The translations under genes were made by a program, and so were the position numbers. A stretch of DNA of 63,034 bases, the filler included, from Octopus bimaculoides (taxonomy: Eukaryota): the NCBI RefSeq assembly GCF_001194135.2. It is 3 parts of 3 records of this genome, joined end to end, with 100 filler letters (N's around TTAATTAATTAA, not from the genome) between each part and the next. Parts side by side here need not be neighbours in the genome. Positions count along the whole stretch, not along the records: positions 1 to 29,195 come from NC_068987.1; 2 more parts are not named here. One strand, written 5' to 3'. Shown one piece after another: positions 1,745 through 26,410 of this stretch. The first letter of the stretch is position 1, and every line of letters starts with the position of its first letter. Below the pieces are notes generated by a model. The model worked only from the letters and a program-made list of their open reading frames with translations, was not told the origin of the DNA and did not search any database.

Positions 1745-3588
1745 TTACCATTCCTGGTTCAACAACTGCAGGAGTAATGCCTAGCTAAAGATAAACCCCT
1801 ATACTTAGCTTTTGTGGACTTGGAGAAAGCCTTTGACAGACTCCCCCAATCCCTTATCTGGTGGGCAATGCGGAAACTGGAGATTGATGAATGGTTTAAT
1901 AAGGGCTGTACAGGCCCTGTACATAGAGACCGTTAGTAAGGTTAGGATTGGCAATGAGTTTTGTGAAGAATTCCGGGTAGAAGTAGGGGTCCACCAAGGT
2001 TCATCCCTCAGTCCCCTTTTATTCATCATAGTCCTCCTGGCAATAACAGAGGAATTCAAGATGGGTTGCCCCTAGGAGCACCTCTATGTTGATGACCTGG
2101 CCCTTATAGCAGAATCACTACCAGAACTAGAAAGAAATTTTGGGTGTGGAAGCTAGGTTTAGAATCAAAAGGCCTTAGAGTCAATGTAGCAAAGACCAAA
2201 GTTCTAGTAAGTAGGAAGGCGAACTCATCACACACACCCTCAGGTAGGTGGCCCTGTTCGATCTGTAGAATAGGTGTAGGTAGAAACTTCATAAGATGTA
2301 CCCAGTGTAAGCTATGGACACATAAGAGGTGCAGCAACATCAAAGGAAGATTAACCGGGAAGATAGTTTTTGTGTGCGGCAGATGCACAAGGGCAATAGA
2401 CACTACAGATGCTCAGAAAACAGATTCCATCACACTCCAGATGCTCAGAAAACAGATTCCATCACACTCCAGATGCTCAGAAAACAGATTCCATCACACT
2501 CCAGGGGGAGAAACTAGAAGTAGTTGATAGTTTCCACTACCTAGGTGACCAAGTTATTAGTGGGCGTGGATGCTCAGAGTGTTACCACTAGAATAAGAAT
2601 TGCCTGGGCAAAGTTTAGAAAGCTTCTACCCCTACTAGTGACAAAAGGTCTCTCGCTCAGAGTGAAAGGTAGATTGTATACTGCATGTATGCGAACTGCA
2701 ATGCTTCACGTCAGTGAAACATCGGCTGTTACTGCGGAGGACATGCATAGGCTCAAAAGAAATGAAGCTAGCATGATCCACTGGATGTGTAATGTCAGTG
2801 TGCACACATGACAGAGTGTAAGCGCCCTGAGAGAAATGTTGGACATAAGAAGCATCGGTTGTGGCATGTAAGAGAGACATTTGCGCTGGTATGTATTACG
2901 GATAGATGAGCAGAGATGTGTGAAGAAGTGCCACTCCCAAACAGTTGAGGGATTCCGGGGTAGAGGTAGACCCAGGAAGACATGGGATGAGGTGGTCAAG
3001 CATGACCTTCAAATGATGGGCCTCACAGAGGCAATGACGAAAGACTGAGACCTCTGGAGATATGCTGTGACTGAGAAAACCTGACAAATAAAGTGAGTTC
3101 ACGGCTGTATCCTACACCAGCTTCACAAAACCAGCCCCAGCCCATTCAAAGTACTTTGGATTGTAGGACGACCTTCTGTGCTTACCTTGGATCGTAGAGT
3201 GACCTGCTGTGCTTGAGGAGACCTATTGAATCAAGTACATCGACATCAAAATAAAAATCAAATGGAAATTGTAGCTGTGATACCTGTGTCGGTGGCACAT
3301 AAAAAGCACCATCGAACGTGACCAATACCAGCGACGCCTTGACTGGCTTCTGTGCCGGTGGCATGTAAAAAGCACCAATTGATCGTGGCCATTGCCAGCC
3401 TCCCCTGGCCCATGTGCTGGTGGCATGTAAATAGCACCCAATACACTCCCGGAGTGGTTGGCATTAGGGAGGGCATGCAGCTGTATAAACACTGCCAGAT
3501 TAGACTGGATTCTGGTGCAGCCTCCTGGCTTCCCAGACCCCGGTCGAACCGTCCAACCCATGCTAGCATGGAAAACGGATGTTAAACA

Positions 3589-3625
<37 letters not shown>

Positions 3626-3633
3626 CGATGATG
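1745..3633 (+). mobile_element. 5'-truncated, degenerate RTE-clade LINE (RT with PHD insert, long 3' UTR, (GAT)n tail)
   Basis: Translations AFVDLEKAFD, GVHQGSSLSPLLF, LYVDDLAL, LRVNVAKTKV, FHYLG and RGRPRKTW with frameshifts. 3' palindrome CCATGCTAGCATGG (3558-3571) precedes the (GAT)n tail (3589-3633). Homologous to the copy at 23689-26410. Confidence 0.93.
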
Positions 3634-3770
3634 AATAATTGAAGTAAAGTTTGACTTATCTTAAGTTTTAGGTTATTATGAATAATAAATAATAATAACA
3701 GATAAAGTAATATTTAACTATTCAAAAATTTATTTATACACCAATTGAAGAGTATTATTATCTACACACA

Positions 3771-5239: not shown

Positions 5240-6786
5240 TCTAAATCTTATCTATTATAATAAACGTGAAGTTGTGTGTCTGTGTGAAGCCTTTTTAAAA
5301 GTTTATAAAAATTCACATTTTCCACTTTTTCGTAAAAATTTTAACATCAATGGAATTTTCTTGATGTGAACTTTCCATTGCAGTAATTAGATTTTTTAAA
5401 TTCCGTTTACTTTGTGTGATTTAAGGGAGATTTGGCTGTTGTTTCTAGCAACTTTTATATTTCTTCCCTTCTACCTGTAGCGGCGTTCATCGATCACGCG
5501 CTCAACATAAGATATAGAGAGTAAGAGTGAGAGAGGGAGAGAGAGAGAGAGAGAGAGAGAGAAAGTGATACATACAAAGTCTTCTTTCTTCTTCCTCTCT
5601 CCCATTTAATAGTTTTCTTGTATCCCTCTACCTCTAACATATTTTTCATAACATAGAAACGTAAAAACACACACAACCACACATNNNNNNNNNNNNNNNN
5701 NNNNNNNNNNNNNNNNNNNNNNNNNNNNNNNNNNNNNNNNNNNNNNNNNNNNNNNNNNNNNNNNNNNNNNNNNNNNNNNNNNNNNNNNNNNNNNNNNNNN
5801 NNNNNNNNNNNNNNNNNNNNNNNNNNNNNNNNNNNNNNNNNNNNNNNNNNNNNNNNNNNNNNNNNNNNNNNNNNNNNNNNNNNNNNNNNNNNNNNNNNNN
5901 NNNNNNNNNNNNNNNNNNNNNNNNNNNNNNNNNNNNNNNNNNNNNNNNNNNNNNNNNNNNNNNNNNNNNNNNNNNNNNNNNNNNNNNNNNNNNNNNNNNN
6001 NNNNNNNNNNNNNNNNNNNNNNNNNNNNNNNNNNNNNNNNNNNNNNNNNNNNNNNNNNNNNNNNNNNNNNNNNNNNNNNNNNNNNNNNNNNNNNNNNNNN
6101 NNNNNNNNNNNNNNNNNNNNNNNNNNNNNNNNNNNNNNNNNNNNNNNNNNNNNNNNNNNNNNNNNNNNNNNNNNNNNNNNNNNNNNNNNNNNNNNNNNNN
6201 NNNNNNNNNNNNNNNNNNNNNNNNNNNNNNNNNNNNNNNNNNNNNNNNNNNNNNNNNNNNNNNNNNNNNNNNNNNNNNNNNNNNNNNNNNNNNNNNNNNN
6301 NNNNNNNNNNNNNNNNNNNNNNNNNNNNNNNNNNNNNNNNNNNNNNNNNNNNNNNNNNNNNNNNNNNNNNNNNNNNNNNNNNNNNNNNNNNNNNNNNNNN
6401 NNNNNNNNNNNNNNNNNNNNNNNNNNNNNNNNNNNNNNNNNNNNNNNNNNNNNNNNNNNNNNTTGTTTCATCACAAATTGCCGTCATAGTTCCTGCTAAA
6501 AGAGATTACCCTGCTATGTATAATCAGGGCAGCGCAAAAAGTTGTTTTGCACAAGCATTTCTATAGCCAATTAGACGGATGAAATTTACGTACGCTTAAT
6601 AATGTTACGCAAAACAGCCTTCAGACTTTCCCTATTAATTTCATCGTCTTTTGAATTATGAACATATTTACATCATAAGGGTTTTTTCGTTGTAAGGCTT
6701 TCTTTTTTAGTTGATTTTCACCTAGCAAGACTTATTGTAGATGGTGTAATAAGTCACACCCGGACAACATCGGGTTATACTGCTAG
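5240..6786 (+). mobile_element. Probable non-autonomous Helitron (spans an N gap)
   Basis: 5' A|TC followed by tctattataataaacgtgaagttgtgtgtctgtg. 3' hairpin ACCCG-gacaacat-CGGGT (6758-6775), then CTAG (6783-6786) followed by T. The two ends are separated by a gap, so a single element is not proven. Confidence 0.55.
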
Positions 6787-10281: not shown

Positions 10282-10498
10282 TTCCATAAACCTGTAAGAA
10301 TTTGGTATGTGGTAGCCCTTGCATAGGCAAGTTATTTTCAAATAAACTATATATNNNNNNNNNNNNNNNNNNNNNNNNNNNNNNNNNNNNNNNNNNNNNN
10401 NNNNNNNNNNNNNNNNNNNNNNNNNNNNNNNNNNNNNNNNNNNNNNNNNNNNNNNNNNNNNNNNNNNNNNNNNNNNNNNNNNNNNNNNNNNNNNNNNN

Positions 10499-15599: not shown

Positions 15600-18500
15600 T
15601 CTCATTGGAAGAAATTGTTAATATAACGATGAGGAAATTTGTGAAGGTGAAAATCAGAAATACAACTGTTAAAATGCAGTTGGACACTGGTAGTGATATC
15701 ACCATTATAAACAGAAAAACTTGGAAATATGTCAGTAAGTCAAAATTAATTAAATCGGAAAAGATAGCACATAGTGTTATGGGAAAAAGATTATATTTTT
15801 TCAGTGAATTTGTATGAAATGTAACATTTTGAGGTCAAATGAAAAAAGCAAAGATATATGAGTGGATGGAGCTATTCAAATTGTGGGATACGCCCATAAG
15901 TGTTCTGTGTGGAAATATAGTTGGGTCAGTCAAAGGTGCAAATGAGGCTGAAGGACTGAAACAAAGAATAAAAAAATTAATTCCAGATGTTTTTTTGAAA
16001 GAACTAGGCTGTTCTACAAAAACAAAAGCTAAGATTGCTATAAAACAAAGTGCAACACCAGTCTTTAGACCAAAACGAAATGAACCTTTTGCAGCAAGAG
16101 ACCAGGTTAACAAAGAACTGGAAAGACTGGAAAGTCTTAGTATAATTGAAAAGATAGACCACTCAGACTGAGCAGCACCGATGGTTTACATGAAAAAGAA
16201 GAATAGCAAACTAAGAATTTGTGCAGATTTTTCAACAGGGTTGAATGATTGTTTAGTTACACATAACTACCCATTGCCGAGTCCGGAGGAAGTGTTTGCA
16301 AAATTGAATGGAGGGAAATTCTCAAAATTAGATCTCTCAGCAGCATATCTACAAATGCAAGTAGAAGAATGCTCACATTTATTAACAATTAACACACACC
16401 GTGGCTTATTTAAATTTAAGTGGTTTCACTTCAGTGTAAAAGTGGTTCCTACCATATTTTAACAAGTAATGGATGCAATGTTGAGTGATTGTGATTTCGC
16501 TACTGCCTATTTAGACTATATTTTAATAAAGAGTGAATTACAGGAACAACACTTTGAACACGTTAAAAGAGTATTTGAGAAAATAAGTGAATATGGGTTC
16601 AAGTTAACAGAAGAAAAATGTGAGTTCTTGTTGAATGAAATCAAATACTTAGGACAAGTAATTGACAAAAACGGAAGAAAACTGGAACCATCAAGGGTAA
16701 TTGCAATAAAGAATATGCCCACACTGAAAAATGTAACTACACTGCAGGTATTTTGGGGTTTAGTAAGTCTAAATTCCAAACACACATAATGTAAGAGTCC
16801 CACTCATTGATCTATTGAAAAAGAATACAAAATGGTGCTGGACAGATAAGTTTCAGAAGGCATTCAATGAATTGAAAAGTATTTTAACTTTGGATCTATC
16901 ATTGACACATTTTGATCCAAAGTTGGAAACTGTACTGACTAAAGATGCAAGTGTGTACGGTGTAGGAGCCATACTTCTGTATAAATATGATGATGGCAGT
17001 AAAAAGGCTATAGCCCATGTGTCAAGGACGTTATTGCCATCTGAAAAGAACTATAGTCAGATAGAAAAAGAGGCGTTGGCAATCATATTTGGTGTCGAGA
17101 TGTTCCATGGATTTATCCATGGAAGTCGTTTCTGTTAGCAAACAGGCCATCGCCCGCTGCTGACAAAAAAGAAATCCCAACACACACAACATTGGGGCAC
17201 TACGTTATTAAATTATGACTACAGAATAGAGTATCTACCATTGAAAAAACTAGAGCATGCAGATGGTTTGTCTAGACTGATACCAAAACACTACAAGCCA
17301 TTTGAAGATACAGTAATCGTAGTTCTAAGAGCTGAAGGTGAAATAAAAAATGTAATGTGGAACATGGTACAAGAATTACTGGTAACCCTAGATGATATAA
17401 GGCAGAATGAGGTAAAAGACAAGTATATAAAGGAAACAAAAAGAACACTGTGGTCAATAAAAGAAAATAGGAACAGGTTTGGTGCGAAACAAAACCAAGC
17501 TGTGAACCCATACTCAATGTATGATGGCATACTGATGTATGCACAGAGAGTAGTGATACCAGAAACGCTACAAAAGAAAATGTTGAGAAAATTTCACATC
17601 AAACATCCTTGTATTTCAAGGATGAAAGCTTTAATGCGCAGTTACATATCCTGGCTGAAAATGGACAGAAAAATCGAAAATTTGGTGAAAGGCTGTAGAG
17701 AAAGTGCTCTAGCAGCAAAATTGCCCACTCTAAAATGTGAACCTTGGCCAAAAGTAGATGTTCTGTGGTCGAGACTACACATCAATTTCGCTGGTTCTTT
17801 AAATGGTTCATTCTATTAAGTGGTAGTTGATGGTTTTTCAAAATGGCCTGAAATTTGCAAGTGTAAAAAACCAACCTGCTCGACTGTTTGCAAGATTTGG
17901 CATCCCAAACAAGATAGTGTCTAACATCATCATCATCGTTTAACGTCCGCTTTCCATGCTAGCATGGGTTGGACGATTTTACTGAGGACTGGTGAACCCG
18001 GATGGCAACACCAGCCTCCAATCTGATTTGGCAGAGTTTCTACAGCTAGATGCCCTTCCTAATGCCAACCACCCAGAGAGTGTAATGGGTGTTTTTACGT
18101 GTCACCCGCACAAAGGCCAGTCAGGCGGTACTGGCAACCGCCACACTCAAAATGGTGTATTTTATGTGCCACCCGCACAAGAGCCAGTCCAGGGGTACTG
18201 GCAACGATCTCGTTCGAAAATCCTTACACATGTCATGGGCACAAGTGCCAGGAAGGCGACGCTGGGCACAGGTGCTATCCCANNNNNNNNNNNNNNNNNN
18301 NNNNNNNNNNNNNNNNNNNTACTGGCAACGGCCACGCTCAAAATGGTGTATTTTATGTGCCACCCGCACAAGAGCCAGTCCAGGGGTACTGGCAACGATC
18401 TCGTTCGAAAATCCTTACACATGTCATGGGCACAAGTGCCAGGAAGGCGACGCTGGGCACAGGTGCTATCCCAATTTCGCTATTCGCTTACCCCAATAAG

Positions 18501-19790: not shown

Positions 19791-22700
19791 AAGTGACATT
19801 TAAGAGATCCAAAATACTTTTCATCTGTTAAGGAAACCATTAGCAGTGATGTCAGGCAAAATGCCTACTCTTTGGAACATGATAGAGATATTAGTACAGT
19901 TAATTTGTCTGAGATTGAATTTGTTAAAAATGATCAATTACTTTTGGAAACTCTATTAATGGAAATTAGAGGAAAATCTATTTCATTTCCTTCGTTTTTA
20001 AAAAAATTTAGAGTAAAAAAAGAACAAGATTTATTAGATGATATTAAGCAATTGGAAACCAGTTTTTTGGAAATCAGGAAATTAGAGAAAAAAAAAGAAA
20101 AGAATAGAGGAGATTCATAAAGTAAAAATGGAGAGCATTATTATTTGCTCAAGGGCCAAGTGAATAGATGAAAGGGAGAAGGCTAGCCAATATTTTTGCA
20201 ATCTAGAAAATAGGATCAAACAGGATTCATGTCTAACAGATACATTGGTAATAACATAAGACTGATATACAATTTGATGAATTACACAGAATCCAATGAT
20301 ATACTGGGAATGGTGTTTTTAATAGATTTTGAGAAGGCATTTGATTCTCATTTTTGGTTTTAGTGAGGACATCTGTAAGTGGTTCAATATTCTTTACAAT
20401 GATGCTAGATCTTATTTGAGTATTAATGGTACCTTGTCTCCTTGATTTCCTGTTGAGTGGGGCTGTAGACATGGTGATCCTCTCTCTCCATATATTTTCA
20501 TCCTGTGTCAAGGTCCTGGCTGGTCTTATAAGAAAGAACAGTGATATTAAAGGAATTATAGTTGACAATGGGGAGTATCTGTTGATGCAGTATGCAAAAG
20601 ATACAGAGTTCATTTTAGATGGTTCACAAAAGTCTTTTGAAGCTACAGTCGATACTTTTTTTGCTGATATATCCGGACTTAAAATTAACTATGATAAGTC
20701 CCAGGTGATAAGGATAGGTGCAAGAAGGGACAGCCCGGTCAGATACTTACCTTGTTTAAACATACAATTGAACCCAGATTATTTCAAGCTTCTGGGTGTA
20801 ATATTTTCAACAGATTTAAATGTTATGGCTAAAAAAGAATTTTGAAAATAAATTATTTGAGATTCAAGTAATAATCAATAGATGGATGAATAGAATAATT
20901 ACACCACCTGGTAGAATTGCTCATTTCAAAATTGAATCACCTCTTCCTTACTCTCCTAAATTTTATCGAGCAAATTTCTTCAGGAATTAAACAAAATGTT
21001 GTTTAAATTTCTCTGGACTGGAAAACCCGATAAGATCAAGAGAATTGTAGCATGTAAGCCTGTTAAAGAGAGCGGATTTGGTATGGTGGAAGCTTCTGCT
21101 TATGTCGCGTCTTTAAAGTTATTTTGGATGAGAAAGTTGTTGGATATTAATTATGAATCCAAATGGAAACATTTGTGCTATGCCTCCTCCCCAAAACTGC
21201 AAAGTTTAGCTGTATTTGGTAACATTTTTCTGAATAAACTCTCCAAGGATGTTAAGAATGACTTTTGGCATAATTGTATTTCTACTTTTGATAAGTTTAC
21301 AAATAAGACAGAGCCTGAATTCATAATAGAACCAATCTATTATAATAAGCACTTAAAAGTTGGTAAAGAGGTAATCTTTTGTTCTGCATAGTTTGATAAA
21401 GGTGTTAGTCAGATTCGTGATTTTATCAACTTAGATGGATTGTATCATACCCTTGCAGAATTCCAGAGTACTTTTGAACTTGATATCAATTTTCTTCATT
21501 ATAATGGTCTTATCATGGTTATTAAAAGCTACCAAGCAAGGTTAAAGATAAGCAAACCTACTTCTCTTCAACAATTAGATGATAATACAGCTATTAGAAA
21601 GCTTGTGTCAGTTAAGAAAGGAACCAAGCATTACTATTACATTTTAAGTGCATCTGGTGTTTGTTTAAAATTCAGACATAAATGGGAAGAGTATATGCTT
21701 GCTGAACTAGAATGGGAAAAAATATTTGTATAACCTATAAAGACAACAATAGGTATTAAATTGCTATGGTTTCAGTTCAGAATTATGCATAGTATTTTAA
21801 CAACTAATTCTGTCCTATTTAAGATCAAATTAGCTGAAAGCAACTTATGCACTTTTTGTCAATTTGAAGTTGAGACAATAACACACCTTTTTTTGGTATT
21901 GTACAACATGTGAAAGCTTTTTGGCAACACTTTCTTGAATTGTTGTATTGAAAATGCTTGCATGTTCACACCATGTACTTTGACCTACAGCTTATTGTGT
22001 TTGAGTTGAGAAAGAATATATATACTGATGGTGTTTTTGACTTACTATCATTGTTAGCTAAATTTTTTATATATAAAAGCAAAGTGAGAATAAGAGTATA
22101 AGATTAGGATGGGCAAAGTTCAGAGAGCTTGTGAGAATAAGATTAGGCTGGGCAAAGTTCAGAGAGCTCCCACCCCTTCTGGCAACAAAGGGCATCTCTC
22201 TTAGAGTGAAAAGCAGAGTGTCTGATGCCTGTGTGTGAACAGCTATATTGCATGACAGTGAAACATGGGCTGTGACAGCCGAGGACATGCATAAGCTTGA
22301 ACGAAATGAAGCCAGTATGCTTTGCTGGATGTGTAATGTCTGTGTGCATGTTCAACAAGGTGTAAGCATCTTGAAAGAAAAGTTAAGCATAAGAGGCATA
22401 AGATGTGGTGTGCAATAGCGATGACTGTGCTGGTATGGTCATGTGATGTGTATGGACAAGGACAGCTGTGTAAAGAAGTGCTGATCTCTAACTGTGGAGA
22501 GAACCTGTGGTAGAGATAGATTCAGGAAGACATGGGATAAGGCGGTGAAGCATGATCTTCAAACTTTGAGCCTCAAAGAGGCAACAACTAGTGACAAATC
22601 TTTGGCAATGTGCAGTGCTTGAGAGGACTCATCAAACGAAGTGCATCCATGCTGGTGGCATGTAAAGAACACGTTTCAAGCATTGGGCCTCATGGAGGCA

Positions 22701-23238
22701 AAGTGACTGAGTTCCTTTCAAGTGTTGGGCTTAACGGAGGCAATGACCAAGACCTTTGACATTATGTTGTGCTTGAGATGAAGGCCCATCAAGCTAAGCA
22801 AAATCGCAGTTGTGGTAGATACTGGTATCAAGCAAATTGGCAGCCATGCTGGTGACACATAAAAGCATACTGGTGTCATGCAAATGGAACCCATGTTGGT
22901 GGCATGTAAAAACATCCATTACACTCTTGGAGTGGTTGGCATTAGGAAGGGCAGCCGTAGAAAACCATACCAAATCAGACTGGAGTCTGGTGCAGTCTTC
23001 CAGTGTGACAGCACGGTCAAACTGTCCAACCCATGCCAGCATGGACAACGGATGTTAAATCATGATGATGATGATGATGATGATGAAAGTATTAAAAAAT
23101 GCTCTTAGCTTTAAACATTTTAAACACTTTGTACATGATAGGTATCATATTGAAAAGAACATATCTTTTAGTAAAAGTGAGCAAGATAAATTTTATAAAA
23201 AGTGGATGCTTTACTATGATTTTGCAAATGTTAAGTAA
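19790..23238 (+). mobile_element. L1/Tx1-like LINE ORF2 remnant (interrupted at 22086-23090)
   Basis: LLMEIRG, FLIDFEKAFDS, GCRHGDPLSP, QYAKDT, GLKINYDKS, FKFLWTGKPDKIKR and FQFRIMH..CTFC..ETITHLF. The C-terminus YKSKV|LKNA..IEKNI..KW* resumes after the insertion. Confidence 0.88.
22086..23085 (+). mobile_element. 5'-truncated RTE LINE (3' coding end plus UTR) with putative 5-bp TSD AAAGT
   Basis: RIRLGWAKFREL, WYGHVM and RKTWD; (GAT)n tail; AAAGT at 22081-22085 and 23086-23090. Confidence 0.88.
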
Positions 23239-23688: not shown

Positions 23689-26410
23689 CATCATCATCAT
23701 CATTATCGTTTAACGTCTGTTTTCCATGCTGCCATGGGTTGGATGGTTCGACTGGGGTCAGGACGGTTTGACGGGAAAGCCAGGAGGCTGCACCAGACTC
23801 CAGTCTGATCTGGCAATGTTTCTACAGCTGGATGCCTGCTCCGAGAGTGTAGTGGGTGCTTTTTACGTGCTACCGGTACAGGGGCCAGTGGGGGCTGGTA
23901 TTGACCACAATTAGATGGTGCTTTTTACGTAAGACCAGCATGGGAGCTAGTCAAGGCGGTGCTGGTATTGGCCACATTTAGATGGTGCTTTTCGCATGCT
24001 ACCGACACGGAGACCACAATTACAATTTCCATTTGATTGTGATTTGATTTCATTTGATGTTGATGTACTTGTACTAGGTTTCCTCAAGCACAGCATGTTG
24101 CCCTATGATCCAAGGGTACTTTGAATTGGCTGGTTATGCAACACTGGTGTAGGTTACAGCTGTGATCTCGCTTTATTTGCCGGGTCTTCTCAGTCACAGC
24201 ATATCTCCAGAGGTCTCTATCTTTTGTCATTTCCTCTGTGAAGCTCAATGCTTGAAGGTCATGCTTCTCCACCTCATCCCATGTCTTCCTGGGTCTCCCT
24301 CTACCCCGGATTCCTTCCACTGTTTGGGAATGGCACTTCTTCACACAGCTCTCCTCGTCCAGCCACAGTACATGACCATACCAATGCAAACGTCTCTCTT
24401 GCATGCCACATCCAATGCTTCTTATGGCTAACATTTCTCTCAGGGTGCTTACACTCTGTCGTGTGTGTACACTGACATTACACATCCAGTGGATCATGCT
24501 AGCTTCATTTCTTTCAAGCCTTTCAAGTCTTCAGCAGTCGTTGCCCACGCTTCACTGCCTTGAAGCATGACAGTTCACACACATGCATCATACAATCTAC
24601 CTTTCACTCTGAGCAAGAGGCTCTTTGTCAACAGTAGCTGTCTGAACTTTGCCCAGGCAATTCATATTCTAGTGGTAACGCTCTCTGAGCATCCACTCTC
24701 ATTTTTGACTTGGTCCCCTAGGTAGCGGAAACTATCAACTACTTCTAGTTTCTCCCCCTGGCATGTGATTGAATCTATTTTCTGAGCAACTGTGGAATTT
24801 ATTTCCCCAGTGCATCTGCCGCACCCGAAAGCTATCTTCCTTTGATGTTGCTGCACCTCTTATGCATCCATAGCTTACACTGGGTACATCTTATGGAGTT
24901 TCTACCTACACCTTTTCTACAGATTGAGCAGGACCTCCTACCTGAAGGGGTATGTGATGTGTTTGCCTTCCTACTTACTAGAACTTTGGTCTTTGCTACA
25001 TTGACTCTAAGGCCCTTTGACTCTAAACCTTGCTTCCACACCTGGAATCTCTTTTCTAGTTCTGGTAGTGATTCTGTTATGAGGGCCAGGTCATCACCAT
25101 AGAGGAGCTCCCAGGTTCAACCTGTCTTGAATTCCTCTGTTATTGCTTGGAGGACTATGATGAATAAGAGGGGGCTGAGGGCTGATCCTTGGTGGACCCC
25201 TACTTCTACCTGGAATTCTTCACTATACTCATTGCCAACCCTAACCTTACTAACAGAATCTCTGTATAGGGCCTATACAGCCCTTATTAACCATTCGTCA
25301 ATCCCCAGTTTCCACATCACCTACCAGATAAGGGATTGGGGGACCCTGTCAAAGGCTTTCTCCAAGTCCACAAAAGCCAAGTATAGGGGTTTATCTTTGG
25401 CCAGGTAATTCTCCTGCAGTTGCCGTACCAGGAATATAGCATCAGTGGTGCTTCTACCTGGCACAAAACTGAACTGCATCTCATCTAAGCGGACTCTCTT
25501 CCTAATTAGTTGGGCTATGACCTTTTCCATGACCTTCATCACCTGATCCAGCAGTTTGATACCCCTGTAGTTATTTCTATCTAAAGCATCACCTTTACCC
25601 TTTTAGCAGTTGACTTTGGTGCTGCTACGCCAGTCATTGGGTATGATTCCATCATGAACTACCTGGTTTACTATATAGGTGACTAGGCCATAGATATTTT
25701 AAGCATCTCAGCAGTGATTCCTGATGGGCTGGGGGCTTTTCCTGGCTTCATATCTGTAATTGCTTTATCTACCAGAGTGCTATCTATTCGGATAACTGAT
25801 CCCTCTACTGGGTCAATATTTGACAGGCTCTTCTTCCCCCATTCATTCTCCATGTTCAGCAGTCTTTAATAATGGCTTCTCCAAGCCTCTTTCTTTTCCG
25901 AATCATTAAAAACAAGTGCACCATCATCCATGCGGACACATTTCTCTCCTGTGACATCACAATTTTTTCTCACACACTGTCTTGCTATCCAAAATACTTC
26001 AGTTCTTTGGTCCTCACGTCGTTGGACATTAGCAAACTTCTTCTTTTCAGCTTTGCCCTTGGCTATGTATATCTGTTGCCCAGCCTCCCTTCTGGCTATC
26101 TGGTACAGTTCCCTGCTACCCCCACACTTCCAGGCCTGTTTCTTTGTTCTAATGGCTTTGTCTACTGTATTATTCCACCACCATGTTACTCTAGGTCTGG
26201 AAGGGACTTTGCACCATCTGCAGACTTGGTCTGTGGCACTCAGTAAGCTGTCCCATAGGAATTTCCAACTACCTTTTATGTCTGAGGTCTGTAGCTCCTC
26301 CTCCCTCTCATCAAATTTCTTGATGAGGATGTCCCTAAATCCCTGACCATGTGAAGGGTTCTTTAGCTTCCAAATCCTTCTTTTCTGGATTAGTCTGCTT
26401 CTTGGCATTC
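23689..26410 (-). mobile_element. Long 5'-truncated RTE LINE copy (linker, RT with PHD insert, 3' UTR)
   Basis: TWWWNNTVDKAI, QFSFVPGRSTTDAIFLVRQLQE, FVDLEKAFDRVP, VVDSFRYLG and GRGRPRKTWDEV; (CAT)n tail complement at about 23689. Confidence 0.93.

Follow-up and report, generated by a model that had tools for sequence, protein, structure and literature searches.

A 63,034-nucleotide stretch of Octopus bimaculoides DNA (assembly GCF_001194135.2), referred to here as the window, consists of three parts from three records joined end to end by fillers of 100 letters, with positions 1 to 29,195 taken from NC_068987.1. This first piece contains remnants of LINEs (long interspersed nuclear elements), apparently of the RTE group, in which a PHD-type zinc finger lies inside the reverse transcriptase (RT). 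In copy 1, on the plus strand, the pattern C-x2-C-x10-C-x2-C-x4-H-x2-C-x14-C-x2-C is encoded at 2255-2386 and comprises CSIC, CTQC, H, C and CGRC. Its translation, CSICRIGVGRNFIRCTQCKLWTHKRCSNIKGRLTGKIVFVCGRC, forms an uninterrupted C4HC3 array in one open frame, directly preceded by a conserved W-P at 2249-2254. The finger is situated between RT motif 6 (LRVNVAKTK, 2174-2200) and RT motif 7 (FHYLGD, 2532-2549), and the exact C4HC3 spacing between KTK and YLG motifs reported by a first-pass annotation of this DNA is thus confirmed by translation and motif coordinates.

The same annotation called the finger intact, which holds for the copy 1 finger itself and fails for the elements around it. 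Copy 1 is 5'-truncated, starting at about 1751 without its endonuclease part, and carries frameshifts near 1896 and 2132 as well as several in-frame stops. A tandem duplication of a 32-nt unit (3.3 copies, 2400-2504) in the linker behind the finger is specific to copy 1 and missing from copy 2; it is a lesion and no part of the family design. Copy 2, on the minus strand, starts at about 26267, lacks the endonuclease and is likewise interrupted by stops and frameshifts. Its finger reads CSICRKGVGRNSIRCTQCKLWMHKRC at 24930-24853 (-), from CSIC to KRC, with CGRC at 24823-24812 (-). Between 24853 and 24823, a 13-nt deletion at 24840-24825 (-) breaks the frame, which accounts for the frameshift already noted in this second copy alongside its retained CSIC, CTQC, H..C and CGRC. 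Copies 1 and 2 are dead relics.

Profile searches agree that the pattern is a PHD finger within an RT. The copy 1 finger reaches 28.6 bits with Pfam PHD (PF00628) when searched as 50 residues and 26.1 bits when searched within 126, where the curated cut-off is 24 bits, and the RVT_1 match upstream of it scores 52.8 bits. When the 29.2-kb piece is translated in six frames, a generic PHD regular expression matches once, against no match in 200 shuffles.

The finger is shared by a large family of related proteins. With a stitched translation of the window as the query, 928 homologues were retrieved at E<1e-5, and the figures on identity and finger presence given here refer to the best 120 of these. 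Identity to the window is 40-72%, mostly 40-48%, with a few sequences at 61-72%, Octopus sequences among them; an Octopus bimaculoides protein is 72-79% identical to the window copies at the amino acid level. Most of the 120 carry precomputed RVT_1 and PHD domains. The taxonomic range, as judged from few named database entries, takes in Octopus bimaculoides, O. vulgaris, the clam Mercenaria mercenaria, the hydroid Hydractinia symbiolongicarpus and the lancelet Branchiostoma belcheri, and a few homologues sit in bacterial bins, evidently through host contamination. The finger is present in 120/120 sequences and its C4HC3 pattern is intact in 102/120. The remaining 18 have a finger with H-x3-C or a longer His-to-Cys spacing (e.g. 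WVHGRKKC in P0060) or a single lesion. Pfam PHD scores on intact homologues reach 33.1 (P0047), 30.0 (P0004) and 24.7 bits (P0001), and some members fall slightly under the cut-off (23.9 for P0016 and 23.3 for P0437). A profile of the finger searched against 1.84 billion cluster representatives returned 3594 matches at E<=1e-3 and 870 at E<=1e-10, and most of the top matches with enough flanking sequence show the KTK and YLG context.

Since both window copies are pseudogenes, selection was judged by protein-level conservation across intact open reading frames (ORFs) in place of the ratio of nonsynonymous to synonymous substitution rates. In a 99-sequence alignment, all eight zinc ligands are present in the 90/90 sequences that cover the region, bearing out the Cys/His conservation on which the PHD call depended. 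The ligand columns are the most conserved of the finger. Beyond the ligands, near-invariance extends to a Pro ahead of Cys1, G-V-G-x-N-S-I ahead of Cys3, K-[KR] following the His, a Trp two positions in front of that His, a Leu (L456) and a Phe or Tyr ahead of Cys7. Mean column conservation is 0.76 in the RT core, 0.68 in the PHD finger, 0.64 in motif 7 and the thumb and 0.49 in the two flanking linkers; without its eight ligands, the finger still averages 0.62 (38 columns). The PHD finger is about as conserved as the RT thumb. Given the presence of homologues, the column conservation and the counts of cluster representatives, the finger is evidently old, widespread and under purifying selection.

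Because both window copies are pseudogenes, one might suspect that a single copy captured a host exon, or that a decayed element shows this Cys/His arrangement by chance. That explanation has a negligible probability given a finger found in all 120 best homologues, with named members from three phyla, 3594 cluster representatives and no chance match in the shuffles. Chance pattern and single-copy exon capture are both ruled out by family-wide presence, the 90/90 ligands and the shuffles. Conservation also bears on whether the two zinc sites serve only to brace a long palm loop that has no ligand of its own. The leading conservation of the ligand columns would be expected of such a brace, as would the very high confidence with which the finger is modeled within a full-length RT (see below). 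A brace is nonetheless a very improbable sole function, as the non-ligand positions K-[KR] after the His, G-V-G-x-N-S, W and L456 are near-invariant at the surface, the 38 non-ligand columns average as high as they do, and a colinear plant element has a linker of only four codons at this place.

This plant element, an RTE-like locus of Lolium perenne (L003, 5151-7559), delimits the insertion. It is colinear with the near-complete family member P0437 from the endonuclease to the C-terminus in two blocks, covering residues 1-591 of P0437 (endonuclease through motif 6, 36% identity) and 659-859. Between the blocks, L003 has 12 nt (4 codons) whereas P0437 has 67 residues including the finger (592-658). 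The PHD finger and two short linkers therefore form a clean insertion in the loop after motif 6. Alignment of the family profile to R2 proteins reaches motif 6, and alignment to L1 ORF2p ends just before KYLG, which likewise marks the finger as extra sequence between motifs 6 and 7. In sum, these alignments indicate that about 65 residues, made up of a short linker, the 44-residue C4HC3 finger and a second linker, are inserted in a surface loop between the two motifs. The corresponding linker of BovB is probably short as well. To our knowledge, whole folded domains inserted in the catalytic core of a LINE RT are rare. By motif order and nomenclature, the position would correspond to motif 6a of R2. 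A location in the palm/thumb, as first annotated, is right in placing the finger within the RT and can be made more precise: it is the loop that leads from palm motif 6 to motif 7.

The class of the host element was established from relatives that extend further toward the N-terminus (P0210, P0226 and P0437). In P0437 (880 aa), one ORF contains the C-terminal half of an apurinic/apyrimidinic endonuclease (APE; GDFNGHVG ... QHKLL), a linker, the RT, the PHD finger, the thumb and a C-terminal region, and P0210 also spans APE and RT. Pfam on the N-terminal extensions gave only a sub-threshold Exo_endo_phos_2 match (E=1e-3), and a search for homologues of the APE part then resolved its identity: these match Pfam Exo_endo_phos, and in Mercenaria and Helianthus they go under the name ‘craniofacial development protein 2-like’, which we take to be the usual database label for RTE/BovB-type endonuclease domains. 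Identity is 36% colinear to the plant RTE-like element versus 15-19% to L1 and R2. In the window copies, a 3' untranslated region (UTR) of about 500 nt closes with an (ATG)n tail. Together these features support an RTE-group LINE with one ORF in which APE precedes RT, so that the annotated PHD finger inside the RT of an RTE LINE is sustained and turns out to be family-wide and strongly constrained. As in RTE-1, BovB and plant RTE, a single ORF starts with an N-terminal APE of the ‘craniofacial development protein 2-like’ type followed by the RT, the thumb and C-terminus carry FxYLG, ...SETW... and GRGRPRKTW, and the 3' UTR ends in a simple repeat. A search of contigs with P0018 and P0005 for a complete element yielded 5'-truncated copies only, with no complete 5' end, and a search for N-terminal protein sequence returned only fragments of up to 517 aa.

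Structural models are in keeping with a PHD fold. An AlphaFold2 (AF2) model of the intact relative P0004 (694 aa), built from the 99-sequence alignment, has a mean pLDDT of 90.6 and a pTM of 0.87, with 95-97 in the finger region. When the whole model is compared to the PDB with Foldseek, human LINE-1 ORF2p and R2 proteins in complexes of target-primed reverse transcription (TPRT) are matched at E ~1e-21 to 1e-22 with a TM-score of about 0.6. The window finger modeled separately (pLDDT 83) has two short strands and a short helix in a PHD-like arrangement. Its best Foldseek match is BPTF (TM 0.72), followed by Pygopus 1/2, ARID5 and TAF3, and the top 50 matches are PHD fingers almost throughout, with few other cross-brace zinc fingers (two FYVE domains and Rim2). 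A sequence profile of 56 fingers searched against the PDB finds Pygopus best (E=2.6e-7), then PHF13, PHF23, KDM5B-PHD3, Alfin-like, BPTF, PHF2 and TAF3. The PHD-like fold implied by the first-pass annotation is accordingly seen in these models: the finger is predicted to be of the PHD type, with a putative two-zinc cross-brace.

The first-pass annotation proposed that a PHD finger in the RT could anchor TPRT to chromatin or to RNA of the element. In the histone-reader version of this idea, the finger would recognize the H3 N-terminal tail, with K4 methylated or not, so that nicking and TPRT would depend on a chromatin state and new copies would land with a bias. Nearly all of the closest solved PHD fingers, by profile and fold, are H3K4me2/3 readers (Pygopus, PHF13, PHF23, KDM5B-PHD3, Alfin-like, BPTF, PHF2 and TAF3). 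The finger retains a Trp two residues before the His in 91/92 sequences and a Tyr, Phe or Trp two residues before Cys1 in about 82%. These two aromatic positions are equated with Y341 and W366 of human PYGO1, which presumably form its K4me pocket; the numbering fits the profile alignment. Like the Pygopus PHD finger (4up0, 2vpe and 2dx8), that of the LINE follows the scheme Y-P-C-G-x-C ... I-L-C ... C-x-K-W-x-H-x-x-C-x-G. Pygopus binds H3K4me2 together with BCL9. In contrast to Pygopus, however, the LINE finger is basic (+6 versus -6), its first loop is shorter and it has no long insertion before Cys7. The H3 tail is itself basic, the first loop that supplies further pocket walls in Pygopus and BPTF is replaced here by the invariant G-V-G-x-N-S, and PHD cores generally share an aromatic residue ahead of the His. 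Recognition of histone tails is thus kept alive by the nearest solved relatives and the two aromatic positions and weakened by the positive charge and the shortened first loop, and we regard it as possible but unlikely. A bolder version, in which the RT-embedded PHD finger is a true chromatin reader at the DNA-wedge site of the RT and senses histone-tail state or nucleosome surface during nicking and priming, is improbable. Were it true, this would be the first non-LTR (long terminal repeat) retrotransposon in which the catalytic subunit itself is the chromatin reader that selects or licenses sites of integration.

Charge and position together suggest a different role. The net charge of the finger averages +6.3 over 56 members (range +2 to +10) and is +10 in the window copy, while it is -6 in both PYGO2 (4up0) and PYGO1 (2vpe). 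Basic residues occupy conserved columns, as in H-K-[KR]-C and with Arg or Lys at several others. In TPRT complexes of R2, RT motif 6a touches the upstream target DNA or forms a wedge in it, and the motif has been suggested to lock the ribonucleoprotein (RNP) on the correct site (PMC12180492, PMC11204384, PMC13188248). By analogy, the finger, a fixed RT subdomain of one RTE-group LINE lineage, may act as a basic clamp on nucleic acid, likeliest target DNA, a proposal made with moderate confidence. A DNA or nucleosome clamp during TPRT is favored over a classical histone-tail reader. In this scheme, the finger would fold on two zinc ions and lie against the body of the RT, next to the route of the target DNA. 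With its conserved basic face it would clamp nucleic acid, likeliest the target DNA upstream of the nick and possibly nucleosomal, and would stabilize the RNP on its target during first-strand priming. These elements appear to have no N-terminal DNA-binding domains, a lack for which the clamp could make up.

Several considerations weigh against the proposed clamp. The placement of the finger relative to the template, primer and target paths derives from topology and the R2 precedent, and its correspondence to R2 motif 6a is one of motif order and nomenclature as opposed to residue-level superposition. Histone tails rather than nucleic acid are the ligand of most characterized PHD fingers, and the closest solved relatives of this one are H3K4me2/3 readers by both profile and fold. 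The conservation would be explained just as well if the finger were purely structural or recruited a host protein. The same basic charge is equally compatible with RNA binding, and the finger might bind the 3' UTR or template RNA of the element, recruit a host factor or mediate multimerization, with no part in holding target DNA. The conserved 3' end with its (ATG)n tail in the window copies would fit template recognition specific for the 3' end, and PHD fingers are versatile protein-binding modules. On the other hand, the loop corresponds topologically to the DNA-contacting loop of R2, and such an RNA-side or protein-side module appears doubtful.

Comparison with known systems places the clamp in context. 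As in R2, the RT loop after motif 6 is elaborated, and the whole-RT model matches R2 structures at E ~1e-21. Unlike the finger, 6a of R2 is a loop and not a zinc finger, the two being equated by motif order. R2 has an N-terminal zinc finger and Myb domain and a C-terminal restriction-like endonuclease (RLE), none of which was seen in the PHD-bearing family. A search of the literature for an equivalent loop in L1 ORF2p structures found nothing. Recruitment of PHD fingers by non-LTR retrotransposons has a parallel in CR1/L2-like LINEs, where PHD domains in ORF1 were reportedly noted by Kapitonov and Jurka in 2003. Those fingers have also been described without functional study (Metcalfe and Casane, 2014, PMC4120745). 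In CR1/L2-like LINEs, which belong to the Jockey superfamily, the PHD finger is part of a separate ORF1 protein, whereas here it lies within the catalytic RT polypeptide of an RTE-group element. Chromodomain-bearing Ty3/gypsy elements (chromoviruses) embody a similar concept, with a fold of the chromatin-reader type joined to a retroelement's integration machinery, but they differ in fold, in enzyme (the C-terminus of integrase) and in element class.

RTE-group elements are abundant in marine invertebrates and notorious for horizontal transfer, as in the case of BovB. They are reported to be expressed in octopus brain, and the octopus element RTE-2_OV, known here by description and not by sequence, is said to contain only an endonuclease, an RT and a ‘C2H2’ finger (PMC9115989). 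The full-text literature yielded no account of a PHD finger inside a LINE RT, in a search whose scope left most subscription journals and Repbase Reports outside; this agrees with the first-pass annotation, which knew of no mechanistic account. The RVT_1 and PHD architecture may have been noticed without being analyzed, because it is visible in precomputed domain tables. As far as this search reached, an RTE-group LINE lineage with a PHD finger in the RT at the motif-6a site is novel, with no earlier description found.

The finger bears on how APE-type LINEs keep hold of their target during TPRT when they lack ORF1 or N-terminal DNA-binding domains. At the position of the R2 DNA wedge, a basic and conserved zinc finger would give target engagement in RTE-group elements a concrete, directly testable handle that can be mutated. 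The finger also has practical relevance to gene-insertion tools built on retrotransposons, for which additional RT modules that hold the target are sought. If the finger reads histones instead, LINE integration would be linked directly to chromatin state.

The coordinates of the three copies and of their parts are collected in Table 1. Copy 3, a related subfamily, retains only the coding part after motif 7, the 3' UTR and the tail, and lies tail-to-tail with copy 2 at a distance of about 600 nt. Its PHD region is missing because of 5' truncation. The 3' end of copy 1 is common to the other window copies.

Table 1. Features of the PHD-bearing LINE copies in the window (positions along the whole stretch; TRF, Tandem Repeats Finder)
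Feature	Position	Strand	Basis
Copy 1 coding remnant, from about RT motif 2/3 to the stop	1751..3084	+	tblastn of intact homologues, three-frame translation, motif coordinates
RT motif 3/A, AFVDLEKAFD, holding a catalytic Asp; columns nearly invariant	1808..1837	+	family alignment
RT catalytic motif 5, YVDDLA (family consensus YADD)	2085..2102	+	motif coordinates, alignment
RT motif 6, LRVNVAKTK	2174..2200	+	motif coordinates, alignment
PHD-type C4HC3 zinc finger, 44 codons	2255..2386	+	Pfam, alignment, AF2 and Foldseek, shuffles
Tandem duplication, 32-nt unit x3.3, in the post-PHD linker	2400..2504	+	TRF
RT motif 7, FHYLGD (family consensus FCYLGD)	2532..2549	+	motif coordinates, alignment
Copy 1 thumb and C-terminal region, then stop	2563..3084	+	tblastn, motif coordinates
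Copy 1 3' UTR, with (ATG)n microsatellite tail at 3589-3634	3085..3634	+	sequence, TRF
Copy 3, related subfamily, 74% nt identity to copy 1	22131..23086	+	copy comparison, tblastn
Copy 2 3' UTR and (ATG)n-type tail	23690..24182	-	translation, copy comparison
Copy 2 coding remnant, linker upstream of the RT through ORF end	24183..26267	-	translation, tblastn, motif coordinates
Copy 2 PHD finger	24812..24930	-	translation, comparison with copy 1

A further conserved motif, GRGRPRKTW, occurs near the C-terminus of both longer copies, at 2959-2985 (+) in copy 1 and 24305-24279 (-) in copy 2 (family consensus RGRPRKTW). It gives a weak Pfam AT_hook match (E=0.13) and, by its sequence, may provide a second, minor-groove DNA contact in the same protein. 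Among the matches of the finger profile, P0454 (466 aa, a predicted protein) joins a BRWD_AD domain (BRWD/PHIP ancillary domain, Pfam 81.5 bits) to a LINE-type finger (PHD, 29.6 bits). It could be a gene-model chimera created by intronic insertion, or a case of exaptation.

In the 3' UTR of copy 1, three units of about 65 nt are loosely repeated at 3250-3450 (+), with the form ...CCGGTGGCA[CT][AG]TAAAAAGCACC..., and copy 2 carries the same units at 23880-24010. A fragment at 17925-18100 (-) consists of just the last ~170 nt of the element 3' end, simple-repeat tail included, and represents a copy with extreme 5' truncation or else a SINE-like element (short interspersed nuclear element) sharing the LINE tail. 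A perfect (TGTA)29 microsatellite at 1600-1716 adjoins the 5' truncation point of copy 1. Runs of N mark gaps in the assembly at 741-1597, 5685-6462 and 10355-10498. Unrelated LINE RT fragments are found at 14317-13486 (-), 20217-20505 (+) and 28189-27998 (-); the last covers motifs 5-7 and has a short linker between motifs 6 and 7, with no finger.

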